Part shown: positions 11,899 through 33,530 of the stretch, piece after piece
Layout: the number at the start of each line of letters is the position of its first letter
How positions within the stretch are numbered: position 1 is the stretch's first letter
Source: Anolis carolinensis
Taxonomy: Eukaryota
DNA: 64,000 nt
Direction of reading: 5' to 3'
Assembly: GCF_035594765.1 (NCBI RefSeq)
Contig: NC_085841.1
Coordinates: forward strand, 346,651,402 to 346,715,401
The notes under the pieces: generated by a model
Told to the model about the DNA's origin: nothing
Database searches by the model: none
What the model saw: the letters and a program-made list of their open reading frames with translations, nothing else
Position numbers and translations under genes: made by a program

Positions 11899-14800
11899 TT
11901 ACTCCCCAAAGGCACATCGGAAAAGCCATGTTTTTAGATCTTTCTTAAAGGCTAACAAGGTGGGGGCTTGCCTAATCTCAGTGGGCAATGAATTCCACAG
12001 TCGGGGGGCCACAGCAGAAAAAGCCCTCTCCCTCGTTCCCACAAGACGGGCCTGGGACAGAGGCAGTGGCGAAAGAAGGGCCTCCCCGGATGAGCGGAGG
12101 GAACGAGCAGGTTTATGGTAGGAGATACGGTCCCTAAGGTAGGTGGGTCCCAAACCGTTTAGGGCTTTATAGATGATGGTCTGCACCTTGAATTGGGACC
12201 GGAAAGTGAACGGCAGCCAGTGGAGCTCTTTAAACAGGGGAGTAGATCGTTCCCTGTAGCTCGCCCCTGTTATTAATCTGGCTGCCAAGCGCTGGACCAA
12301 TTGTAGTTTCCGGGCCGTCTTCAAGGGAAGCCCCACGTAGAGCGCATTACAGTAGTCCAGTCTAGAGGTAACTAAGGCATGCACCACCGTGGTCAAGTCA
12401 GACTTCACGAGGTATGGTCGCAGTTGGCGCACAAGTTTGAGTTGTGCGAAAGCCCTCCCGGCCACCGCCGACACCTGAGCCTCAAGCGTCAACGCTGAAT
12501 CCAGGAGGACCCCCAAACTGCGGACCTGTGATTTCAGGGGGAGTGCAACCCCGTCCAGCACAGGTTGCCACCCAATACCCCGATCAGATGGGCGACTGAC
12601 CAGGAGGGCCTCTGTCTTGTCAGGATTGATCCTCAGCTTGTTCCTCCTCATCCAGTCCGCCACAGCGGCCAGGCACTGGTTCAGAATCCGAGGGGCTTCC
12701 TTGGAGTTAGATGGAAATGAGTAGTGGATTTGCGTGTCATCTGCGTAGAGATGGCAACACCCTCCAAAACTCCGGATGACCTCTCCCAACGGTTTCATGT
12801 AGATGTTAAATAGCATAGGGGATAAAATAGACCCTTGCGGGACCCCACAGGTCAATGGCCAGGGGTCCGAGCAGGTGTCCCCCAGCTTCACCCTCTGGGA
12901 ACGACCCTCCAGGAAGGACTGGAGCCACAGCAGAACCGTGCCACCGAGCCCCATCCCGGCGAGCCTCCCCAGAAGGATACTATGGTCGATGGTATCGAAA
13001 GCCGCTGAGATGTCCAAGAGAACCAGCAGGGTCACACTCCCCCTGTCCAGCTCCCTGCGGAGGTCATCCACCAGGGCGACCAAAGCCATCTCGGTGCTGT
13101 GCCCAGGCCTGAAGCCAGACTGCGAGCGGTCCAGAAAATCAGTGTCATCGAGAAATTCCTGGAGCTGCGTGGCAACCACCCGCTCCAGAACCTTGCCCAA
13201 AAACGGGAGGTTGGAGATTGGTCTGTAGTTGTTACAAATAGATGGGTCAAGCGAAGGCTTTTTTAGTAGTGGTTTTACTACCGCCTGCTTAAAGTAGGAT
13301 GGCACCGACCCCTGAACCAAAGAAGCATTTATTATGGTCACAAACCAATCCAACAACCCATCTTTGGCCAGCTTGACCAGCCAAGAGGGACAAGGATCCA
13401 GAGCGCAGGTGGTCGCCCTCACAGACCCAAGAATCCCCTCCACGTCATCAGGAAGAACAAGCCGGAAAGAATCCCATAAGATCGAACAGACAGGTACCTC
13501 GGTTACCTCCGCTGAGACCACAATTGAGCTGGAGTCTAGCTCAAGGCGTATCTGAGCAACTTTGCCTGCAAAGTGGTGCGCGAAATCGCTGCACCCAGTT
13601 GCCAAGTCATCGGGAAGCCCCTGGACCTCAGGAGGCCGCAGGAGCTCCCCCACAACTCGGAACAACTCCGATGGCCTGTTGGCTGCAGACGCTATGCGGG
13701 CAGTCGTGAAAACTTTCCTGGCTGCTCGCAGAGCCACGGAGTACGCCTTAATAGCGGCTTTAGCCCGTGCTTGGTCGGACACGTCCCGAGATTTCCTCCA
13801 GATGCACTCTAGTCCCCTCCTCCTACGCTTCATCACAGCCAACTCCTCGGTAAACCAAGGAGTCGACGCGACTCTACGCAGTGAGAGGGGACGTTCGGGA
13901 GCGATCGTGTCCAATGCCCTTGATAGCTCACTATTATAGCGATCAACCAGGACATCGACAGGATCGCCAGTCTCCAGGACAGGAAGATCCCCAAGAGACC
14001 TCAGAAGTCCATCCGGATCCATCAGTCTCCTGGGGCGGACCATCTTAATGGGTCCACCACCCCTGCGGAGGTTAGAAGGCACGGCGATACTTAAACAGAT
14101 CAGATGATGGTCAGACCATGACAATGGAAGAATGTTTTGCTCTTCCACTCTGACTGTCCCACCGTCCACAATAAAAACAAGGTCCAAGGTGTGTCCTGCC
14201 TGATGTGTGGGCCCAGATATAACTTGAGACAGCCCCATGGTTGTCATGGCAACCATGAAATCCTGAGCTGCACCTGTCAATGTGGTCTCGGCATGAATGT
14301 TAAAGTCTCCCAAAACTATCAGTTGTTGGGAGACAAGGGCCGCATTGGAGACCACTTCTGCTAGCTCGGACAGAGAGACTGCTGGGTCGCGGGGTGGACG
14401 GTACACCAACAGAATCCCCAAGCTGTCTCGGGCTCCCACCTTCAGGAAGACACACTCGAACCTCGGGGATTGTGGAACGGCGCATCTGATCAGGGCGATG
14501 GACTGCCGAAAGATCACCGCAACTCCTCCTCCCCGCCCCCCAACTCTGGCCTGTTGATGCACCCCGAAACCAGGAGGACACAGCTGGGTAAGATTCACAC
14601 CTCCCAGCTCATCCAGCCATGTCTCAGTGATGCATGCCAGATCTGCCCTCTCATCCAGGATCAAATCCTGGATGACAGCTGTTTTACCATTGACAGATCT
14701 GGCGTTCAAAAGCAAGACCTTAAGGTTGGGGGGTCTGTCCTGAAGACTACCACACCTAATCCTCTCCAGGGTCGCAAAAACTCTGTTGCGCTTCTCCCTG

Positions 14801-14916
14801 GGTTGGTGGTGACCGTGCTTTCTCCTCCCCCATATCACCTCAATGGAGCCACCTCCAGTCAAGCCCTCCTCCCCCTGATGGAAGAACTGGGCGGAATTGC
14901 CAGTTGCCGGGACTAG
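11899..14916 (-). CDS. L2 ORF2: AP-endonuclease plus reverse transcriptase; the open frame starts right after the ORF1 stop and has no 5' AUG
   Basis: APE motifs NARS, TETWL, GGGVA, YRPP, GDFN, HTLD, SDH. RT motifs YRPISNL, QSGFR, DISAAFDTIDH, GVPQGSILSP, YADD. L2-type C-terminus (SRLDYCN...LHWLP...FSAVAPRLWNSLP...FKKDLKTWLF). The track start at 14862 is TTG; the frame is open back to 14916. Confidence 0.95.
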   Translation of the reverse strand, partial: LVPATGNSAQFFHQGEEGLTGGGSIEVIWGRRKHGHHQPREKRNRVFATLERIRCGSLQDRPPNLKVLLLNARSVNGKTAVIQDLILDERADLACITETWLDELGGVNLTQLCPPGFGVHQQARVGGRGGGVAVIFRQSIALIRCAVPQSPRFECVFLKVGARDSLGILLVYRPPRDPAVSLSELAEVVSNAALVSQQLIVLGDFNIHAETTLTGAAQDFMVAMTTMGLSQVISGPTHQAGHTLDLVFIVDGGTVRVEEQNILPLSWSDHHLICLSIAVPSNLRRGGGPIKMVRPRRLMDPDGLLRSLGDLPVLETGDPVDVLVDRYNSELSRALDTIAPERPLSLRRVASTPWFTEELAVMKRRRRGLECIWRKSRDVSDQARAKAAIKAYSVALRAARKVFTTARIASAANRPSELFRVVGELLRPPEVQGLPDDLATGCSDFAHHFAGKVAQIRLELDSSSIVVSAEVTEVPVCSILWDSFRLVLPDDVEGILGSVRATTCALDPCPSWLVKLAKDGLLDWFVTIINASLVQGSVPSYFKQAVVKPLLKKPSLDPSICNNYRPISNLPFLGKVLERVVATQLQEFLDDTDFLDRSQSGFRPGHSTEMALVALVDDLRRELDRGSVTLLVLLDISAAFDTIDHSILLGRLAGMGLGGTVLLWLQSFLEGRSQRVKLGDTCSDPWPLTCGVPQGSILSPMLFNIYMKPLGEVIRSFGGCCHLYADDTQIHYSFPSNSKEAPRILNQCLAAVADWMRRNKLRINPDKTEALLVSRPSDRGIGWQPVLDGVALPLKSQVRSLGVLLDSALTLEAQVSAVAGRAFAQLKLVRQLRPYLVKSDLTTVVHALVTSRLDYCNALYVGLPLKTARKLQLVQRLAARLITGASYRERSTPLFKELHWLPFTFRSQFKVQTIIYKALNGLGPTYLRDRISYHKPARSLRSSGEALLSPLPLSQARLVGTRERAFSAVAPRLWNSLPTEIRQAPTLLAFKKDLKTWLFRCAFGE

Positions 14917-15870
14917 TCAACTGTCCTGGAAAGGAAAGCCTCCAAAAGTGCTTGTTTGTTTACAAAAGGAGCTTCTCTCCATTAATGGGAGAGAGGAGTC
15001 GATTGATTTGGCCTCATCATGAATAGTAAGCCGACTAGACAAGAGTGGAGACTTGTTGTGGGACTGGGGGGTAGAACAAGCACGACTTCGCAGTGGGGAA
15101 TCTTGAACATCCATACTCGGCCCGATGTCCAAGGGGCGAATTAGTGGGTCTACTAGCACCCTCCTAAGAGTGATGCCCCACTGTTGCAGTTTAGGCCCAC
15201 ACAAATACAATTTATCCCTTAATATTTTATCTTCCAAGCCGATGATAAGACACAGGGAGCGGTTCCAGGATTGGTACTCCCTACAAAGCCAGTCGATAGT
15301 CTTAATCTTCACTTCCGACCGGCTTATGGATAAAATTTGAGAGAGAGATATCTGGACCGCTCGCTTAGAAGTCCACCTGCCTCTATTCAATAATGAGTCT
15401 GAAACTTCCACTGCAACCTTATTTGTTCGTAAAAGATGTTGAGAATTGCAGGAAGTAACCAAAGATTGTTCGACCAATTTAGAGGACAGCTCATTATTCG
15501 GCTTCTGCAGGGCATTGTTGGTATCCTTCCTATCCATCCTCCCCATGCTCATTCCCACAGATAAGGCCCCACCCCCCTTTCTAGTTACTCCAAGGCCTGA
15601 TCCGACGACTACCTTCTCCTCCTTAGGCTTAATTCCCCCATGGCCTTCCAGAGAGCTTAATTCCTTATTCATGTTAATGGGCCTGGTTGATATAGTTGTT
15701 ATAATGTCCGTAGGAGAAGGATTTTTTACAATCAGGGAAATTCCTTTGAAGAGATGGTCAAGTTTCAAGTTCAGAATTTCCAGCTGTTGCAAGACGGTAT
15801 TGAATGATTTTCCCAGCAGATCACATAGGTTTGCGAGTTCATTCTTCCCTGAAGTTTCCTTCCAACTCAT
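14917..15870 (-). CDS. L2 ORF1 (317 aa), putative nucleic-acid chaperone
   Basis: ATG-started 317-aa ORF directly upstream of ORF2. It has an N-terminal leucine-rich heptad-like segment and a C-terminal alpha/beta region reminiscent of LINE ORF1 RRM domains (inference). Confidence 0.8.
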   Translation of the reverse strand: MSWKETSGKNELANLCDLLGKSFNTVLQQLEILNLKLDHLFKGISLIVKNPSPTDIITTISTRPINMNKELSSLEGHGGIKPKEEKVVVGSGLGVTRKGGGALSVGMSMGRMDRKDTNNALQKPNNELSSKLVEQSLVTSCNSQHLLRTNKVAVEVSDSLLNRGRWTSKRAVQISLSQILSISRSEVKIKTIDWLCREYQSWNRSLCLIIGLEDKILRDKLYLCGPKLQQWGITLRRVLVDPLIRPLDIGPSMDVQDSPLRSRACSTPQSHNKSPLLSSRLTIHDEAKSIDSSLPLMERSSFCKQTSTFGGFPFQDS

Positions 15871-16812
15871 TTCCTGTTACCTTCTCAGAGAACCTTCCTA
15901 TAGTATACCACTCTACTCTTTCAAGAATTAACACCACGTTCCGTTCAAGCTTTCATTCAACAGTACATCCACCAACATACACAAACCATCAATTCACATT
16001 CTAGAGCCATCAATTACCAAACAGTAAACTCACGGTACTCTCCAATCCTATGTGATCACTTCCTATGACATTAATACCAGGTTAAAAACCTGCCCCCTCT
16101 CACGACCAAAACTACTTCCCTGAATTAAGTTAAAAGCTTTCTCACTCCCGACTCTGTTAACACACACACACAAACACGTACACACACACCAAAAAAAAAA
16201 AAAAGAAGCCAGGCTGTAAACACTCAGAGTCTTATAGAAGCTGCTTCATACAGGTCCACCCAATTGAGGATATCTCGAGGCCTCCTGGTTCGATGTAAAT
16301 GCAGTAGAGCAGAGCTGATGAGGTTGTCTTCCCCCGTAACACGACCTCCAGTGCCAGAGGAAAAACGCTGGAATGGCGGACGGGCTACTTCCTCCCTCCT
16401 CCTCTCCTCCGCGATCCTCTACAGCCTTCAAACAGCTCCAACAACTCTCAGGGTAGGCCCGAAAGCCCCAAGGCACAGCGCTGAAAGAGCTGCGGGAGGC
16501 CGCCCAGTCCGGAGCGGTCCCCGGAGGCCGATTCTCTTTAGCACGTCCGAGAGAGGGCTGGAGGTGGCCGCCCGGTTCGGCGCGGCCTCCACGGGCCTAG
16601 TTATTACAAGGCCGGAAAGAGGTTGGAGGAGGCCACCCGGTCCGGCGTGGCCTCCAAAGGCCTAGATTCTCTTCGAGGCTGAGTGAAGGCTACAGGAAGC
16701 CGCCCGGTTCGGCGCGGCTTCCAGAGGCCTCGTTGTTTTCTGATGGCTGAAGGGGGGGGGCTAGGAGAGGCCACCCGATTCGAAGCTGCCTCCAGAGGGC
16801 GAGGGTGGTCAC

Positions 16813-17311
16813 CGGAGGCCGAGGCAGGAGCTGAAAAGAAAGCCTCCAAGGCTGGTAAGAGCACTCGGGGAGGCAGCCCGGTTCGGCGCTGCCTCCAGAG
16901 GGTGCGGGTGGTCGTCGGAGGCCGAGGCAGGAGCTGAAAAGAAGGCCTCCAAGGCTGGTAAGAGCACTCGGGGAGGCAGCCCGGTTCGGCGCTGCCTCCA
17001 GAGGGTGCGGGTGGTCGTCGGAGGCCGAGGCAGGAGCTGAAAAGAAGGCCTCCAAGGCTGGTAAGAGCACTCGGGGAGGCAGCCCGGTTCGGCGCTGCCT
17101 CCAGAGGGTGCGGGTGGTCGTCGGAGGCCGAGGCAGGAGCTGAAAAGAAGGCCTCCAAGGCTGGTAAGAGCACTCGGGGAGGCAGCCCGGTTCGGCGCTG
17201 CCTCCAGAGGGTGCGGGTGGTCGTCGGAGGCCGAGGCAGGAGCTGAAAAGAAGGCCTCCAAGGCTGGTAAGAGCACTCGGGGAGGCAGCCCAGTTCGGCG
17301 CTGCCTCCAGA
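16813..17311. repeat. 103-bp tandem repeat, ~5 near-identical copies, in the L2 5' UTR
   Basis: The anchor CTGAAAAGAA recurs at 16831, 16934, 17037, 17140 and 17243, a period of exactly 103 bp. Confidence 0.95.
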
Positions 17312-17658
17312 GTTGAGGACGAGACCGGGGAGAGGCCACCCGGTTCGGCGTGGGCTCAGATAAACAGAAGAGAGCTGGGAGCGATCGTCCGGCTCCCCCC
17401 CAATGCTCACCACCACCGTCGGGACTCTCAGATCGGGCAGCCGGAATGGCGGCCGGGCTTCTCCTCTCCCTCCTGGACTTCTGCAGCTCCGTCGGCGGCT
17501 CCTACAGCCCTTGCAGTAAGGCCACGTTTCCAGAGTTAGCCAGCAGCCTCACCCCTCTAATAGCAGCCGGTTGGGGGTATGGTGGGGCCGTATAACAGGG
17601 ATAAGTGGCGGTATTTTTGCTCCTCGTCGGCGGAGCTAGTCACGGAGGCTGTTTTCAT

Positions 17659-17670
17659 GCCGCCATCTTG
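17659..17670 (-). promoter_or_regulatory. YY1 consensus motif CAAGATGGCGGC at the L2 5' terminus (internal Pol II promoter candidate)
   Basis: Exact match to the extended YY1 consensus, within a few nt of the element boundary and at the edge of a CpG island. Confidence 0.65.
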
Positions 17671-17947
17671 CCTCTATCATTCCACACCCAGAATCTTCCC
17701 TTTCTCTTTTGCCAGTATCCTGGCATAATGGCAACTGCAAGTAATATGGTATCTCTTCTGGTCACTGTTTTGGAGAGGATACTGTCGGCCGGGGTTTATT
17801 TTAAGTTGGGAATTTTAATCTGCATTTCCATCAGTGGATTTTAACTTGTATCTCGTTTATGTCTTTTAATAGTGTTTTATCCCTTGTTTTAATAATGTTG
17901 TATCCCACCTTGAGCTGCAGGGAGAGCCAGGCAATACATCAATCATT

Positions 17948-17989
<42 letters not shown>

Positions 17990-26075: not shown

Positions 26076-29000
26076 GAACTTTGTGTGTGTGTGTCATCAC
26101 ACACATACACACACACCTTAATCTGAGGAAGGAGAAACTCAAGAGCGTGGAATGCCCAGGGAGTGCTAAACCAAAACTTCTTTAAAAAGTATGATCATGT
26201 TGTCTTGGGAAAGCAACACAAGGGAGTCCATAGCCCTTGTTCCAATACTTAAGAATCAGTGCTTCAGAATCTTTGTTCTAAATTCAGTGTCCAACTGTTC
26301 TCAGCAGGCTTGCTTTGTCACTTTGATATCCCTCTTTCCCTCCGGGGTAATCTTTTTTTTTTTTTTTTAACCACACTTCTCCTACTTTGGTCTGTCAAAG
26401 CTGCCATTTGCTAGCCTGACTTGCGAGGAAAACAGAATGAACATCAATCTTGTCAAGCGCCACGCCGTTAGGAAGCTTCCTGTAATGATAATGTGCGTGT
26501 CTGGGTTTTTTAGCTGCTGTCAGTCAAAATCACTAGTTCCAAGATAAGGTTATGGGAAGACCTACAATAACAAGAATGGGACTCTTACAGACAACAGCAC
26601 AGATTGCAGCTTCCCAGTGGGTCATCATTCCCAGACGCCAAAGTGTAAGCCTGGTGCTTTGTCTGGTTTGAAGTTACTGATGCTGACCGAGAGAGACAGC
26701 AGATTGCATTTTACACTTAGACCAATGTTTAGCAAAGGTGAGAGAAATTCACAGCCAACTGCCACAGCAACTGGGACTGCCAAGAGGCCAAAGATCATGA
26801 GCAGAGTGTATTGTTCAATGTTAATTCTCTAGCACCTCCAGTTAGCATTAAAAAGATAGCAAGGTCTATGCTTGAGACCTTGGAAAAGTGCTGCAAATAC
26901 TGCCAGGTTTGCCTTAGAATTAGGAGCCTCGTATGTTCACGCCTTTTCTGCAATTATAATTTCCATGACAGCCCTAATGTGTTTTGTGTCCATTGTAAGT
27001 CACCAGCCACCTCCAGGGCAAGGAGGCCTATAGATGCTGGAGATGTTTTTGTAAGTCATTCAGCCAAAGGGGCTCTTGCAAAAATGTTAGGACTTGCACA
27101 TTTTAACAATTAAAGCACACCCACACCCAACACAAAGAGCCTTGCATGGATCTTAATTTGGAAAAATGAAAAACGTAGACAAGATTTCATCTCTCTCTTT
27201 TGTTGTTGTTACATTACAATTTCATTTATTTTGTTTGATTTTTGCTATCTCAAGGTTTGCTACCTCAATATGAGAAAAGGAGATGAAACATTTTGGGAGT
27301 GTCATGAATGCCACCCATGTCAAGCGTTGTCAACTTGCCTCTTCATTAACAGCAGGAATAGTAATTGGGCTGTTGTTGAATTACAGTGGCCAGCAGTCCT
27401 ATCCCATATATCAAATTGTGAGGAATGCTGGGAATTGCAATTCAGTAACAACTCTAGAGCCACACAAATTGACCCTGATTACAACTCTATCCACCTCAAA
27501 AGGCATTTTCACCCTTTCTCCTCTTCCATGACCTCCACTGGACCTCAATTCCTTCTGCAAAGAGAGGGAGCTTTTCTTTTGCACTTCTATTGTAGTTCAC
27601 ATAAAAACAGTGGTGTACCTGCTTGTAGTAGCATAGCTGGCAGTGCAATAGAAATAGTTTTACAAAATAAAGGAGAATTTTCACTTCAGAACCACATTCA
27701 ACCTGACAAGGTGACCTCTGATGAGGCTCACCAGGCTGAAAATCTGAGAGCCTATGAACTGTTAATGGGTATATAGAAGAGGGAATTTAAGTTCTTGCTT
27801 GTTACGTATTTGCAACACCTAGTGAAACTTACTCTTCTACACATTCATGAAAGGTTAAAGAGCCCTGTAGCTTTCAGCATGGCAACCCTAGTCCTTCATG
27901 CCTCGTGCCTATCTACAGCCCGGTTTGAATCAGGGCTCTTGGACACATAAACATAGGTATTTGGGGACATCACATGAATTTGTTATTCATATTTTTACAA
28001 ACTTGTTGATGAGGTAAGTCCTTACCAAAGAGTAGGGGGTTTATTTTTTTGTATCACATTTCAAGGATAGGTTACATTTTATATACTGCATTTTAATACT
28101 TTTAAAGACAAAATAAACAACTGTAATCTGACTATGATGAGCGAGATTACACAGGATAAAACTTTAAACAGGAATCATGACAAACTCAAAATGACATTAA
28201 GCAGCTATGATAACACAGGTGAAGTAAGACAATGACACAGATAAGACATTTCTGATAAGGATAAGGGGAGTGAAAACCTCTTGCTTGGAGCAAAGATAAC
28301 ACATTTGGTCATAGATCAGTGGGCTAGAGATGTCGAACTCCTGGCTGTCTGGAAAACCACATGTTAAGGAATACATTCAAAAATATTAATTAACTCGGTT
28401 TCAGAGTGTCCAAAAACTCAACAAAGCTCAGGAAAGTTACTCTTCGGATTACAGCTCCGTAACCCCCCAGCTAAGGGGACTGTGGAAGCAGTAGCTCAAA
28501 AAAGGAATTGTTCAAAAAGATCTGGAAACAAAATGGATTTGGGAGAGTGGAAATGATGTGGGAAACTAATCCTGAAGAATGATGTGGATCAGGATGGGAG
28601 TGGAATCAGGGAGAGGGAGACTTGTGCTGCGATTCTGCTTCTCTCACATAGTTTTATTTAACCTTCATATATCATTTTGAAACAAAGCTTTGGAAAAAGA
28701 AACAGAATTTGGATATCATGGAAGCAACAGAACGGAAAAAGTCTTAAGAAAGACAGGAAGAAAAAGAAAAAGCTGAAAAGTCAAGTGAGAAAAAACCACC
28801 AAAGATCAAAGCATTTACATACAAGACTGTGCCCTCAAGTCCCATATCAGCTAAAAGGCTCAGAAGAATACCATAGTCAATAGTACCAAATACCATTGAA
28901 AGATCCAGGAGGACTAGCAGGAACACACTCTACATCTAACTCCCGTGCAGGTCATCCACCAAGGTGAACAAAGCTGTTTCTGCCCATAACCGGGCCTGAA

Positions 29001-29369
29001 CTCAGATTGAAATGGATCCAGGTAATCCATTTCTAAGAAAGCCTGGAGTTGTGTTGTCACCACTCACTCTTAAGACCTTACTTAAAAAGAGAAGATTAAA
29101 GAGTGACCGATAGTTACCTAGGGAGGAGGTGTCCCATGAAGGTTTGTTTTCAGCAAGTGGCCAGTCCTTCCCTGGCAGCTTTAATCAATCAAGATGGATA
29201 TATGTGTAAGAGACAAGTACTTGGCCTCACCTCTCCAAGCAATATGCCCACATCATCATACTGAACAACCTGAAACACATCAATCAAAACTAGACAGCAA
29301 ATCTAAACCCAGATATTTGTCTATCCGTGACAATGTGGTTCTTTCAAACTTCCCTATCCCCAGATCACC

Positions 29370-29371
<2 letters not shown>

Positions 29372-29439
<68 letters not shown>

Positions 29440-29993
29440 CGTTGCTCAAATGATTCATTGGAACTTGTGCCACAAATACCATCTGCCTGCGACAAAGAAC
29501 TGGTGGGATCACAAGCCAGAAAAAGTTACAGAGAATGAGCATGTCAAGCTACTCTGGGACTTCAGAATTCAGACAGACAAGGTTTTGGAGCACAATACTC
29601 CTGACCTCACGATCGTGTTAAAAGACAAAGTATGGATTGTCGATGTCGCAATCCAAGGTGACGGCAGGATTGAGGAGAAACAACTGAAAAAGTTGACACG
29701 ATATGAGAATTTAAAGATTGAACTACAAAGACTCTGGCACAAGCCAGTCAAGGTGGTCCCAGTGGTGATCGGCACACTGGGTGCAGTGCCTAAAGGCCTT
29801 GGCCTGCACTTAAACACAATCGCGCTGACAAAATCACCATCTGCCAGCTGCAGAAGGCCACCTTACTGGGATCTGCTCGCATTACTCGCTGATACATCAC
29901 ACAGTCCTAGACACTTGGGAAGTGTCCGACGTGTGATCCAATTCAACAGCCAGCAGAGTGTATGCTGTGGACTCATTTTGTTGTGTTTCTAGT

Positions 29994-30055
<62 letters not shown>

Positions 30056-30736
30056 CAACAACAAATTTATTTGTACTCCACTACTATCTCCCCCAAGGGA
30101 CTTGGGGCGGCTTACAGCAGCACATAATAGCGCCATAAAACACATAAAAATACAGGTAAAATTACATCAACATGTTAATATAACAATTTCAATTAACATA
30201 AAATACCACATTACAAAATAAAAGGCCAACCCCAATTTAAAAGAACAGTCAGTAAAACACAGCAATAACTACTATTAAAATGGATAGTACAACATCCTGG
30301 CCCCTGCCAAATTTCAACATTCATAGAATCATAGAATCATAGAATAGTAGAGTTGGAAGAGACCTCATGGGCCATCCAGTCTACTATTCTATGATTCTAT
30401 GATTCTTAAAGTGCCAGTGTCAATATTAAGTTATTTGGTCCTTAATATTAGCTGATGTCTTGGTCATTTTCAAAAGCCTGCCTAAAGAGCCATGTTTTCA
30501 GCTCCTTGCAGAAACACTGTGTGGGGGCAAGCCTAATATCCCTGGGGGGGCATTCCAAAGCCAGGAGGGCACCACCAAGAAGGCCCTCTCCCCCATCCCC
30601 ACCAACCGCACTTGAGATGAAAATGGGACCAAGAGGAGGGCATCCCAGCAGATCTTAGAGCCCACACCGGTTCATGGGAGGGATGCAGTCATGAAGATAG
30701 GTTGGACCCAAACTGTGCAGAGCTTTGTAGGTAATA
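29372..30736 (-). mobile_element. Younger 5'-truncated L2 inserted in the old L2, with 5-bp TSD ACCAT
   Basis: L2 C-terminal coding sequence plus 3' stem-loop (30065-30115) and an (AAT)n tail; ACCAT at 29367-29371 and 30737-30741. Confidence 0.75.
29438..29994 (+). mobile_element. R4/Dong-clade LINE 3' fragment inserted in (TAA)n
   Basis: RLE domain IHWNLC...LLWDFRIQTD...PDLTIV...IVDVAI...K...Y..L; long (TAA)n arrays on both sides. Confidence 0.9.
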
Positions 30737-33530
30737 ACCATCATCCTGACCAGCAAAAATCAGATCAATAGTGAGGCTTGTTATATGTGTAGGGCCAGAT
30801 ATTAAATTGAAGTAGGACCATAATTACCATGGGAGCCATGAAATCCTGGGCGTTCCCTGATATGTGTACCTCAGCATGGATGTTCAAATCCCCCAAATAA
30901 ATTAAGTTTGTGGGAGATCAAAACCATTTCTAAGATCACCTCCTGCACTTCAAGAAGGGGGATAGTTGGAAAACAGAACCCCAGTCCTGTTTTATTGTGC
31001 TATTGCAAGATGTGCACACTCAAAACTTGGGAGATTGTCAAACAGGGTACTTCAATATGAGAATGAACCCATGATTGATTACTGCAACTCCTATTAGTAT
31101 TAAATTGACATAGGAAATTGGGGTGGGAATTCAAGTACCACAGATGTTAGTGTTCAAATGCCCAGCTTCTAATTTTGAGATAGGCTGGGAAATGTTCTAC
31201 AGCCGACACTGTTCGGATAAACTAGTGCAAATTGGAATTCATAGCTGAAAGCAGAGAAATAATGCAATTGGGGGGTATACAATGAATAGCAGGGGACTGT
31301 TAATAAGGGGTTTAACTTGACAATTTCAGCATGAAAAATTAACAACTGCAGAAATACTCGTATTTATCATCAGGGTCTCTGTGGGGTACACACAATATAA
31401 ACAATGTGCAGCACCATACTATTCCTGTCTTACAGATACAACAAAGCAGGGCTGAAATAAACTATGTTATGAATATTCAAAAATGGCTGCCTTCTTTTGC
31501 TTTTCAGGGTGGAAATGTTATATTTTGAGGAAAAGGAAAGAAAGAAAATTCAGCGACTTTCTGGAGCATGAAAAAATATACATGAGGAAATAAGAGGACT
31601 GGAGAGGAAAGACACAGTGCCTCTCATTGGGGGTCACTGTGCATCAGGAGTACAATAGGAATGAACAGGGAATATATATACTGCCTCAATGCAGTATATA
31701 TATTCTCCTTCTCTGGAAGTTTTTAAACAAAGGTTGGATGGTCATCTGTCAGGATATTCCTTCATGGCAGGGAGTTGGGACTGGATGGCCCTTGTGGTCT
31801 CTTTCCAACTTTATGGTTCTAAATCAATGATTTCCAACCTTTGATTTTCCAGGTGTTTTGGACCTCAGATCCCAAAATTCCTGACAATTTAACAAGCTGT
31901 CTGGGCTTCTGGGAGTTGAAGTCACAAACAGATGAGTGAAGGCTGGAAATCACTGTTGAAGTAGTATCTGTCAAAATTCATCCAAGAAATCAGTAGAATG
32001 GGTTTATAGGATTTTAATGGCTAGGGCAAAAGCAGATGTGAAGCGACCTAGAACTGGCATTAGTGTCGGCATTAGAACTGCAAATCCAGAGATATCTGTG
32101 GTGCTGCCCTTTGTGGTATTGCAGGGAGCTACAGGAAGGAATGTCGTCTTCTCTGTCAAATATTCCCAGGCTCATCAATGACTTGATTGCACTTAGGATG
32201 CCCACCACTCCATTCTGTCGCAGTGAAATTCGATAAATATATTCCAAATTAGTGTAGAACTTTATCAGGAAAACAACGTTTTATCTCCAATGGTTGCTAG
32301 TGGTGGCCATATTGATAGGGTAGTAAATACATCCCAACTTTTAATCAAAAATTTAAAGGAGCTCCCCAAGGTGCTAAATGTATGGAAAGAGGGGAACAAA
32401 GTTCAACACCTTGGACAGTTCTGTTCAGATGCAAAAGCCTAGAGCAAACTAACATGGAAGCCATCCGCCATGACTGTCTGACACCTAATTCATGGATGAT
32501 GGGTGAATCTACACACTGTAGAATTAATGCTGTTTGACATTTCTTCGACTGCCAGTGCTCATTGCTATGGAATCATGAAAGCAGCAGTTTTACAAGGTCT
32601 TTACCAAACACCAAATCCCAGGATTCCATGTCATTGAATCATAGTAGCTAAAGTGGTGTTAAGCTACATTAATTCTACAGTCAGTAAGTCTATATTGACC
32701 ACTGCTGGCTTATGAATTTTGATTATACAGTCAGCTTACTCTTCAATAAAGAGCAGGGCTAAAACTGTTTAAAATAATAAAATTATATTATAATATATCT
32801 TCAATGAGCATAATGACCAGGTCATAATTTGTCAAGAGCAGTGGTACCGAATTATTTTCATTTACGGTATTTATATGTTAATACAAATACACTAAGTTCT
32901 GAACAAGCTACAAGCTCCCTCTCCTTTTGCCTTTTGTATAAGGAGACTGCATTCTAATACAAGAGATGTTTTTCCCCTCCACCATCACTACATGTTATGA
33001 GTCACTCATTCTCCAGTTCAGAATTGGCCTTGTGATATTGTAAATTAAAATAATAACAACTGCCGCCCCCACAAACAGGAGGAGACTTGGGGGGAAATAA
33101 AGAAAAATATGCAATTTTATGTTACTTGTGGGAGGTATATACATGGTTCCGTAAAGAAATAATTGCCACATTATAAAACTAACAAGCACCGACTGGAAAG
33201 GAGTCCTTGGGGGAGGAAAAGAGGAGGGGCCCATATTTATCATTAATGAGAAGTCTGAGCTAAAGTCACGAATTGGATGAGTTGGAACCACAAGTAGCAA
33301 AGAACATGGCATTTACTGCCTTGGGAGAAGGACAAAAGTCTACAGCCTCATTAAACCTGGCCAGTATTCGTGTGAACATAACTTTAAGATACGCAGATTT
33401 GAGCTTCTGAATATTTGTCCCCAAAAGGCTCATAACCAACCTGTGTTATTTGATACATAAGCTAGAGACATTGCTAGGTCTCTTCCCACATTAACACATG
33501 CAGGGTTATCTTCAGCTGGTGTGTTTAAAG

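Follow-up and report, generated by a model that had tools for sequence, protein, structure and literature searches.

The window analyzed here, a stretch of 64,000 nucleotides from contig NC_085841.1 of the Anolis carolinensis assembly GCF_035594765.1, contains an apparently young and intact LINE of about 6.1 kb, judging from its sequence, and this length fits the range of 4.8 to 6.3 kb given for full-length L2 elements in A. carolinensis (PMC5389967). The features of the element are listed in Table 1. The ORF2 protein matched the Pfam families Exo_endo_phos (3.2e-15) and RVT_1 (5.9e-38), and thus combines an APE-type endonuclease with a reverse transcriptase. It was 92% identical in sequence to a reverse transcriptase protein of A. 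carolinensis and 54% to 58% identical to the reverse transcriptase proteins of other squamates. For the ORF1 protein, a homology search yielded a single homologue with 56% identity, a Pfam search gave no match even at E ≤ 10, and the ESM Atlas returned only unnamed clusters with scores below 0.9. Look-ups of the exact proteins returned no contigs, either with ORF1 or with the closest A. carolinensis reverse transcriptase.

The 3′ end of the element, near position 11570, consists of a short stem-loop (TCCCC-ATA-GGGGA) followed by a (TTA)n tail rather than by poly(A). A short 3′ stem-loop combined with a microsatellite tail is the typical 3′ end of elements of the L2 clade. The name L2 was taken over from the original prediction, and both the relatives of the reverse transcriptase and the structure of the 3′ end agree with this clade. 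The 5′ end was placed at about position 17700 on the basis of a jump in GC content, the presence of a YY1-type box, and a fall in depth that run X2 shows between 17563 and 17805. A target-site duplication was looked for but not detected.

Table 1. Coordinates of the L2 element, its leader, and the hairpin array within the 64-kb window
Feature	Position	Strand	Basis or remark
Full-length L2 LINE, about 6.1 kb	11570..17700	-	Both ends approximate
ORF2, 987 aa, endonuclease and reverse transcriptase	11899..14862	-	Pfam
ORF1, 317 aa	14917..15870	-	Without recognizable domain
Non-repeated tether between array and ORF1, about 620 nt	15871..16494	-	Sequence; T14 and (GT)n low-complexity, 8 upstream ATGs
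ATG-free stretch on the sense strand, spanning the GC-rich block and the array	16250..17657	-	ATG count
Direct repeat bracketing the array, 23 nt	17440..17462; partner 16367-16389 (87%)	-	Repeat family
YY1-type box AAGATGGCGGC	17659..17669	-	Near the inferred 5′ end; the only occurrence on either strand of the 64-kb window
Old part of the array, 4 units with periods of 65-71 bp	16495..16765	-	Hairpins at 16495-16522, 16563-16590, 16628-16655, 16695-16722
Junction unit, chimeric	16766..16793	-	5′ arm of the 103-bp type; 3′ arm GTGGCCTCT as in unit 17331
Young 103-bp tandem array, 5.3 copies, 97% identity	16767..17312	-	28-nt hairpins at 16869, 16972, 17075, 17178, 17281
Second, looser hairpin in each 103-bp unit (GGAGGCC, 20 nt, GGCCTCC)	16917..16950, 17020-17053, 17123-17156, 17226-17259	-	Inverted repeats
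5′-most unit, degenerate stem (7/9), exact core	17331..17358	-	41.7 bits
Arms GGAGGCAGC/GCTGCCTCC, 5 copies	16869, 16972, 17075, 17178, 17281	- (element strand)	9/9
Arms GGAAGCCGC/GCGGCTTCC	16695	-	9/9
Arms GGAGGCCAC/GTGGCCTCC	16628	-	9/9
Arms GGAGGCCGC/GCGGCCACC	16563	-	8/9

Several other repeats were noted in the window. Just 3′ of the L2 tail, an almost perfect inverted repeat (11253-11411, about 150 nt) resembles a MITE-type hairpin repeat; several miRNA precursor families matched it on both strands, but below threshold (for mir-5408, 47 bits against a gathering threshold of 90). The segment directly 5′ of the L2, at 17806-17989, is a very abundant repeat with a depth spike in 4 out of 4 runs and many loose ends at 17851/17858, after which comes a (CAT)17 microsatellite at 17937-17989. 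Diverged fragments of LINE reverse transcriptases, 27% to 59% identical to the ORF2 protein of the present element, were found at 28867-30908 on the minus strand and at 1510-1956 on the plus strand.

The original prediction assigned an array of 11 hairpins to the 5′ UTR of a minus-strand L2, a location borne out by the open reading frames, the Pfam domains, and the homology of the reverse transcriptase. The 11 units start at 16495, 16563, 16628, 16695, 16766, 16869, 16972, 17075, 17178, 17281, and 17331, all exactly where they had been predicted and with the predicted stems, including the weaker pairing of the copies at 16495, 16766, and 17331. A covariance model built from the 8 distinct units and run on the window matched exactly these 11 sites on the minus strand (E ≤ 6e-7, 35.8 to 47.9 bits), whereas only much weaker echoes were detected on the plus strand. 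Allowing for at most 1 mismatch, the core sequence GCCGAACCGG was present at 9 sites in the array and, with 1 mismatch, at 1 additional site at 695-704, giving a total of 10 sites against 0.35 expected in 64 kb, a number that was reached by none of the shuffles. Neither blastn searches with the UTR nor the covariance model identified further copies of the array within the 64-kb window.

The array is composed of an older set of units with periods of 65-71 bp and strongly diverged spacers, and a newer 103-bp unit that has re-amplified the hairpin. This division, which had also been proposed from the sequence, was recovered both by TRF, which reported a 103-bp unit in 5.3 copies with 97% identity (16767-17312) and a 67-bp unit in 2.6 copies with 75% identity, and by a comparison of the spacers. 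The unit at the junction between the 2 parts is chimeric, and its arms pair only if G·U wobbles and one A·G mismatch are allowed. Since every 103-bp unit harbours the second, looser hairpin as well, it looks like a dimer of 2 units that measure about 50 bp each, with the core lost from one of them. The GC content of the array (16495-17312) is 0.66 to 0.67 and its observed-to-expected CpG ratio is 0.68 to 0.82, which are the values of a CpG island. An open reading frame of 270 aa that extends across the array (16604-17416) was rejected as a repeat artefact, as it starts with GTG, has no Pfam match, and belongs to a wider block with stop codons in all frames.

The array is preceded in the sense direction by the YY1-type box and followed by the tether. 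A T14 run and an imperfect (GT)n run (16160-16216) separate the GC-rich block from the AT-richer part of the tether, and the contigs of all runs break there. The sequence AAGATGGCGGC is a perfect YY1-type box within CAAGATGGCGGC and precedes the first unit by about 300 nt. Mammalian L1 elements begin with the YY1 motif CAAGATGGCGG, which positions the start of transcription (PMC5381506), and the match to this motif would place the array inside the transcript. In the direct repeats that bracket the array, a YY1-like core is present in inverted orientation (ATGGCGG on the plus strand) at 17446-17452 and 16373-16379. The best explanation is that the array represents the part of the 5′ UTR that is made up of tandem monomers, located between a YY1-type start box on one side and the tether and ORF1 on the other.

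On the sense strand, the units are predicted to fold into a 12-bp hairpin, in which a helix of 9 bp is followed by a bulged G, an inner helix of 3 bp (CCG/CGG), and an AAC triloop. The identical fold was obtained by RNAfold on a region of 981 nt, by RNAfold on single units, and by RNAalifold on the alignment. The units had been thought to end in a loop of 10 nt that is nearly fixed; this stretch is better described as the inner helix with its bulge and triloop, since CCG pairs with CGG inside it according to both RNAfold and RNAalifold. The predicted stability was -21 to -22 kcal/mol in 7 units and -18.0 kcal/mol in an eighth unit (16563), with weaker folds for the units at the edges of the array (17331 and 16495) and for the junction unit (16766). 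For the 981-nt region as a whole, the fold had a z-score of -8.7 relative to dinucleotide shuffles. A scan of positions 15871-17700 against Rfam at E ≤ 1 gave no match, and a tRNA scan of the UTR identified no tRNA-like gene.

To quantify the pairing, we aligned the 11 units, which correspond to 8 distinct rows and are all paralogous units of one element at a single locus. Standard base pairs were present in 94.8% of the cells, as compared to 32% to 57% if the 3′ partners were slid by 1 to 3 columns. The covariation score was 0.274 against a mean of 0.187 for the column shuffles, none of which (0 of 500) equalled it. Double compensatory changes, on which the original prediction had laid most weight, were found at 3 stem pairs (4/25, 7/22, and 8/21) and exceeded what was seen in the shuffles, in the slid controls, and under a simple null model. 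In a simulation in which the 15 substitutions inferred by parsimony were placed randomly on paired positions within lineages assigned by hand, 3 or more compensated pairs were obtained with a probability of about 1e-4. The change at pair 8/21, from CCGC/GCGG to CCAC/GTGG, consists of 2 CpG transitions, and is less surprising than the others because such transitions are hypermutable. The structure and the covariation are real. The arms change in step, and it is therefore likely that the module is under a constraint that depends on base pairing.

Among the 5 old-type units, the identity was 78% for the hairpins and 45% for the spacers between them; it is the 28-nt module, and not the spacer, that has been conserved in this lineage. 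We also examined Logan contigs from 4 other runs of the same organism. Many of these contigs matched the hairpins but broke at the hairpin edges (at 16587-16593, 16654-16659, 16693-16695, 16870, 17177, 17279, and 17331) and had different spacers of 15 to 40 nt between them. Other arrays in the genome therefore share the module only. At some joints, the contigs, which are fragmentary as is usual for repeats, skipped 102 to 934 bp between hairpin edges, and some of them joined a hairpin straight to position 17445. The array may differ in length, or copy number, among the genomic copies, as far as the contig alignments indicate. A peak in depth at 16510-16752 in run X2 was considered as a sign that the hairpins are more numerous in the genome, and this was dropped since the other 3 runs had no such peak.

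Outside this genome, no hairpin or tandem array was found upstream of the L2 ORF2 gene in 3 squamate loci, 2 from Varanus and 1 from Rhineura. The ORF2 proteins at these loci were 57% to 59% identical to that of the anole element, and no ORF1 was detectable. They are probably truncated copies or represent another type of L2, for which reason the comparison is uninformative. Searches for the exact hairpin pattern in metagenome and viral collections gave no match.

We further considered which strand the hairpin might act on. A total of 11 cells in the alignment are not Watson-Crick pairs when read on the sense strand, of which 6 are G·U pairs, 1 is an A·C pair (equivalent to G·U on the antisense strand), and 4 are true mismatches. 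The excess of G·U over A·C has a one-sided p of about 0.06, with 3 of the G·U cells located in one chimeric unit. All variants found in the inner helix of 3 bp (UGG and UCG) remain paired on the sense strand only, and the predicted fold of the junction unit at 16766 is -11.4 kcal/mol on the sense strand compared to -6.2 kcal/mol on the antisense strand. Contigs that match 16388-16974 exactly occur in runs that may be RNA. There is no ATG on the sense strand between 16250 and 17657, as compared to 6.4 expected under a first-order Markov model in which the 103-bp array counts as a single copy, and 8 on the antisense strand. However, the sense strand contains 3 ATGs at 17658-17680, which is the extreme 5′ end, and 8 in the tether between 15956 and 16249, and these weaken an argument based on scanning. 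Overall, the strand-specific signs may be said to weakly favour a hairpin in the sense RNA.

That the hairpins play a role in the sense RNA is a tentative reading, to which we would give slightly less than even weight. Each monomer would then be built around a 28-nt module that folds into the 12-bp hairpin in the sense transcript, and a protein, which could be ORF1p, ORF2p, or a host factor, would bind to the hairpins as a series of redundant sites. As a counterpoint to binding by ORF1p, no recognizable RNA-binding domain was identified in this protein in Pfam or in the ESM Atlas. Tandem amplification would ensure that enough copies are kept in progeny that become 5′-truncated during retrotransposition, as has been argued for the monomers of rodent L1 elements. 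Most L2 insertions in A. carolinensis are in fact 5′-truncated, with less than 7% being full-length (PMC5389967), and redundant modules at the 5′ end would make evolutionary sense in such a population. For L1Md, duplication of monomers has been proposed to maintain the promoters (PMC6454616). The CpG-rich DNA of the array may double as part of an internal promoter. A more specific version, in which a family-wide selected array of 5′-leader hairpins with the same fold forms a multivalent loading platform for ORF1p and ORF2p (cis-preference or packaging) or for a required host factor, is speculative and, in our estimate, unlikely to be correct as a whole.

The alternative that survives best, which is still somewhat unlikely in our view, is that the units are promoter monomers that act at the level of DNA. 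The 28-bp quasi-palindrome would in that case be a dimeric site for a transcription factor in a tandem internal promoter and CpG island, and the RNA hairpin would be a by-product. Such monomers would account for both the conservation and the CpG island, and several features of the leader are in line with them: tandem CpG-rich units are located upstream of a tether and ORF1, YY1-type motifs are present at the 5′ end and on both sides of the array, and the words GGAGGCC and GGCCTCC are found repeatedly, in either orientation, in hairpins as well as in spacers. Rodent L1 elements offer a precedent (PMC5381506, PMC9022269, PMC6454616). However, if a protein were to read the arms, their sequence should be preserved, and instead both arms change together at 3 positions. 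The asymmetric centre, with the bulged G and the AAC, is kept in nearly all units and has never been symmetrised. Moreover, the cells that are not Watson-Crick pairs lean toward G·U on the sense strand, which is meaningless in duplex DNA, and the YY1 cores are situated outside the units.

It is also conceivable, although we consider it rather improbable, that the matched arms are a by-product of mutation without any selection on pairing. Template switching during replication or reverse transcription would copy one arm from the other, and amplification together with gene conversion would spread the repaired copies. Template switching has been reported to create perfect stems and compensatory changes of several bases in one event (PMC8794818). 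Relative to the CAC/GTG type, both arms of the 103-bp type carry a matched dinucleotide difference (CA to AG on one arm, TG to CT on the other), and the array is visibly recombinogenic, as seen from the chimeric unit at 16766 and the recent amplification of the 103-bp unit. What this mechanism leaves unexplained is the higher conservation of the hairpins (78%) than of the adjacent spacers (45%), as well as the presence in the genome of other arrays that share the hairpin but not the spacers. Furthermore, the asymmetry of the bulge and the triloop has never been erased, and 4 true mismatches persist in the units at the edges in spite of the supposedly frequent repair. Finally, the idea that the hairpins are accidental short inverted repeats in GC-rich tandem repeats can hardly be entertained, for although a high GC content (0.66) and the repeats make the region look more structured than it is, this reading is contradicted by the number of core sites (10 against 0.35), the slid-partner control (32% to 57% against 94.8%), and the simulation of the 3 compensations (about 1e-4), and the fold z-score of -8.7 against dinucleotide shuffles also speaks against it.

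To our knowledge, the 5′ UTR is the least understood part of LINEs, and outside of L1 we know of almost nothing on how it contributes to transcription, translation, and the assembly of the RNP. The L2 elements of anoles are young, numerous, and polymorphic, those of A. carolinensis comprising 17 families and some 380 full-length copies (PMC5389967), and in combination with a short, repeated hairpin that shows compensatory change they provide a tractable handle. The same genome holds hundreds of natural replicates with which selection can be separated from template-switch mutation, and EMSA, SHAPE, and stem-swap tests are feasible with a module of this size. If the hairpins do function as RNA, LINEs may have tandem repeats at their 5′ ends for reasons other than promoter activity alone. 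Should the loading platform also prove correct, no 5′ RNA recognition module would have been defined earlier for a LINE of the L2 clade, and the array would provide a reason at the level of RNA for why the 5′ UTRs of LINEs become tandemly repeated.

A monomeric 5′ UTR is known from rodent L1 elements, and the novelty here is its presence in an L2 with a covarying hairpin at the core of the unit. Our literature search, in which the key paper on anole LINEs from 2009 was not included, retrieved no description of hairpin arrays in the 5′ UTR of L2 elements. The closest likeness is to the monomer arrays of mouse and rat L1 elements (A, Tf, and Gf, with a tether), in which CpG-rich repeats are arranged head-to-tail in the 5′ UTR and a non-repeated tether precedes ORF1 (PMC5381506, PMC6454616, PMC9022269). 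The rodent arrays also resemble the anole array in their recent re-amplification and in being a plausible buffer against 5′ truncation, and the copy number may vary in the anole as well. The differences are that the rodent arrays belong to the L1 clade rather than to L2, and that the mouse units measure about 200 bp and the rat units about 650 bp, as compared to 65-71 bp and 103 bp here. Unlike in rodent L1 elements, the core of the anole unit is a covarying 28-nt stem-loop between drifting spacers, and the YY1-type motifs are located outside of the units. The 5′ UTRs of lizard L1 elements have been reported to be without tandem duplication (PMC5381506).

Structured RNA at the ends of LINEs has been described in 2 other settings. 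The Pr77/L1TcRz element at the 5′ end of the trypanosome L1Tc is similar in that a 5′ segment of a LINE has been proposed to serve both as a DNA promoter and as a structured RNA (PMC3383444). However, Pr77 is a single element of 77 nt at the very 5′ end with the fold of an HDV-like ribozyme, whereas the anole array consists of 11 simple hairpins at a distance of at least 300 nt from the 5′ end, with no match to a ribozyme or to any Rfam family. The 3′ stem-loops of stringent-type LINEs of the L2 clade, UnaL2 and ZfL2, are likewise short, conserved UTR hairpins that are recognition elements for a protein (PMC4176376). The anole element has, like UnaL2 and ZfL2, a short stem-loop at its 3′ end in front of the (TTA)n tail. 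The UnaL2 and ZfL2 signals differ from the array in that they are single and located at the 3′ end, and by inspection the anole 5′ hairpins share no loop or stem sequence with the 3′ stem-loop of their own element.

Lastly, the hairpins resemble those generated by template switching, which are short perfect inverted repeats with matched changes in both arms (PMC8794818). In contrast to these, the anole hairpin is far better conserved than its flanks and has retained an asymmetric centre, and these 2 features point to a constraint beyond the mutational mechanism.
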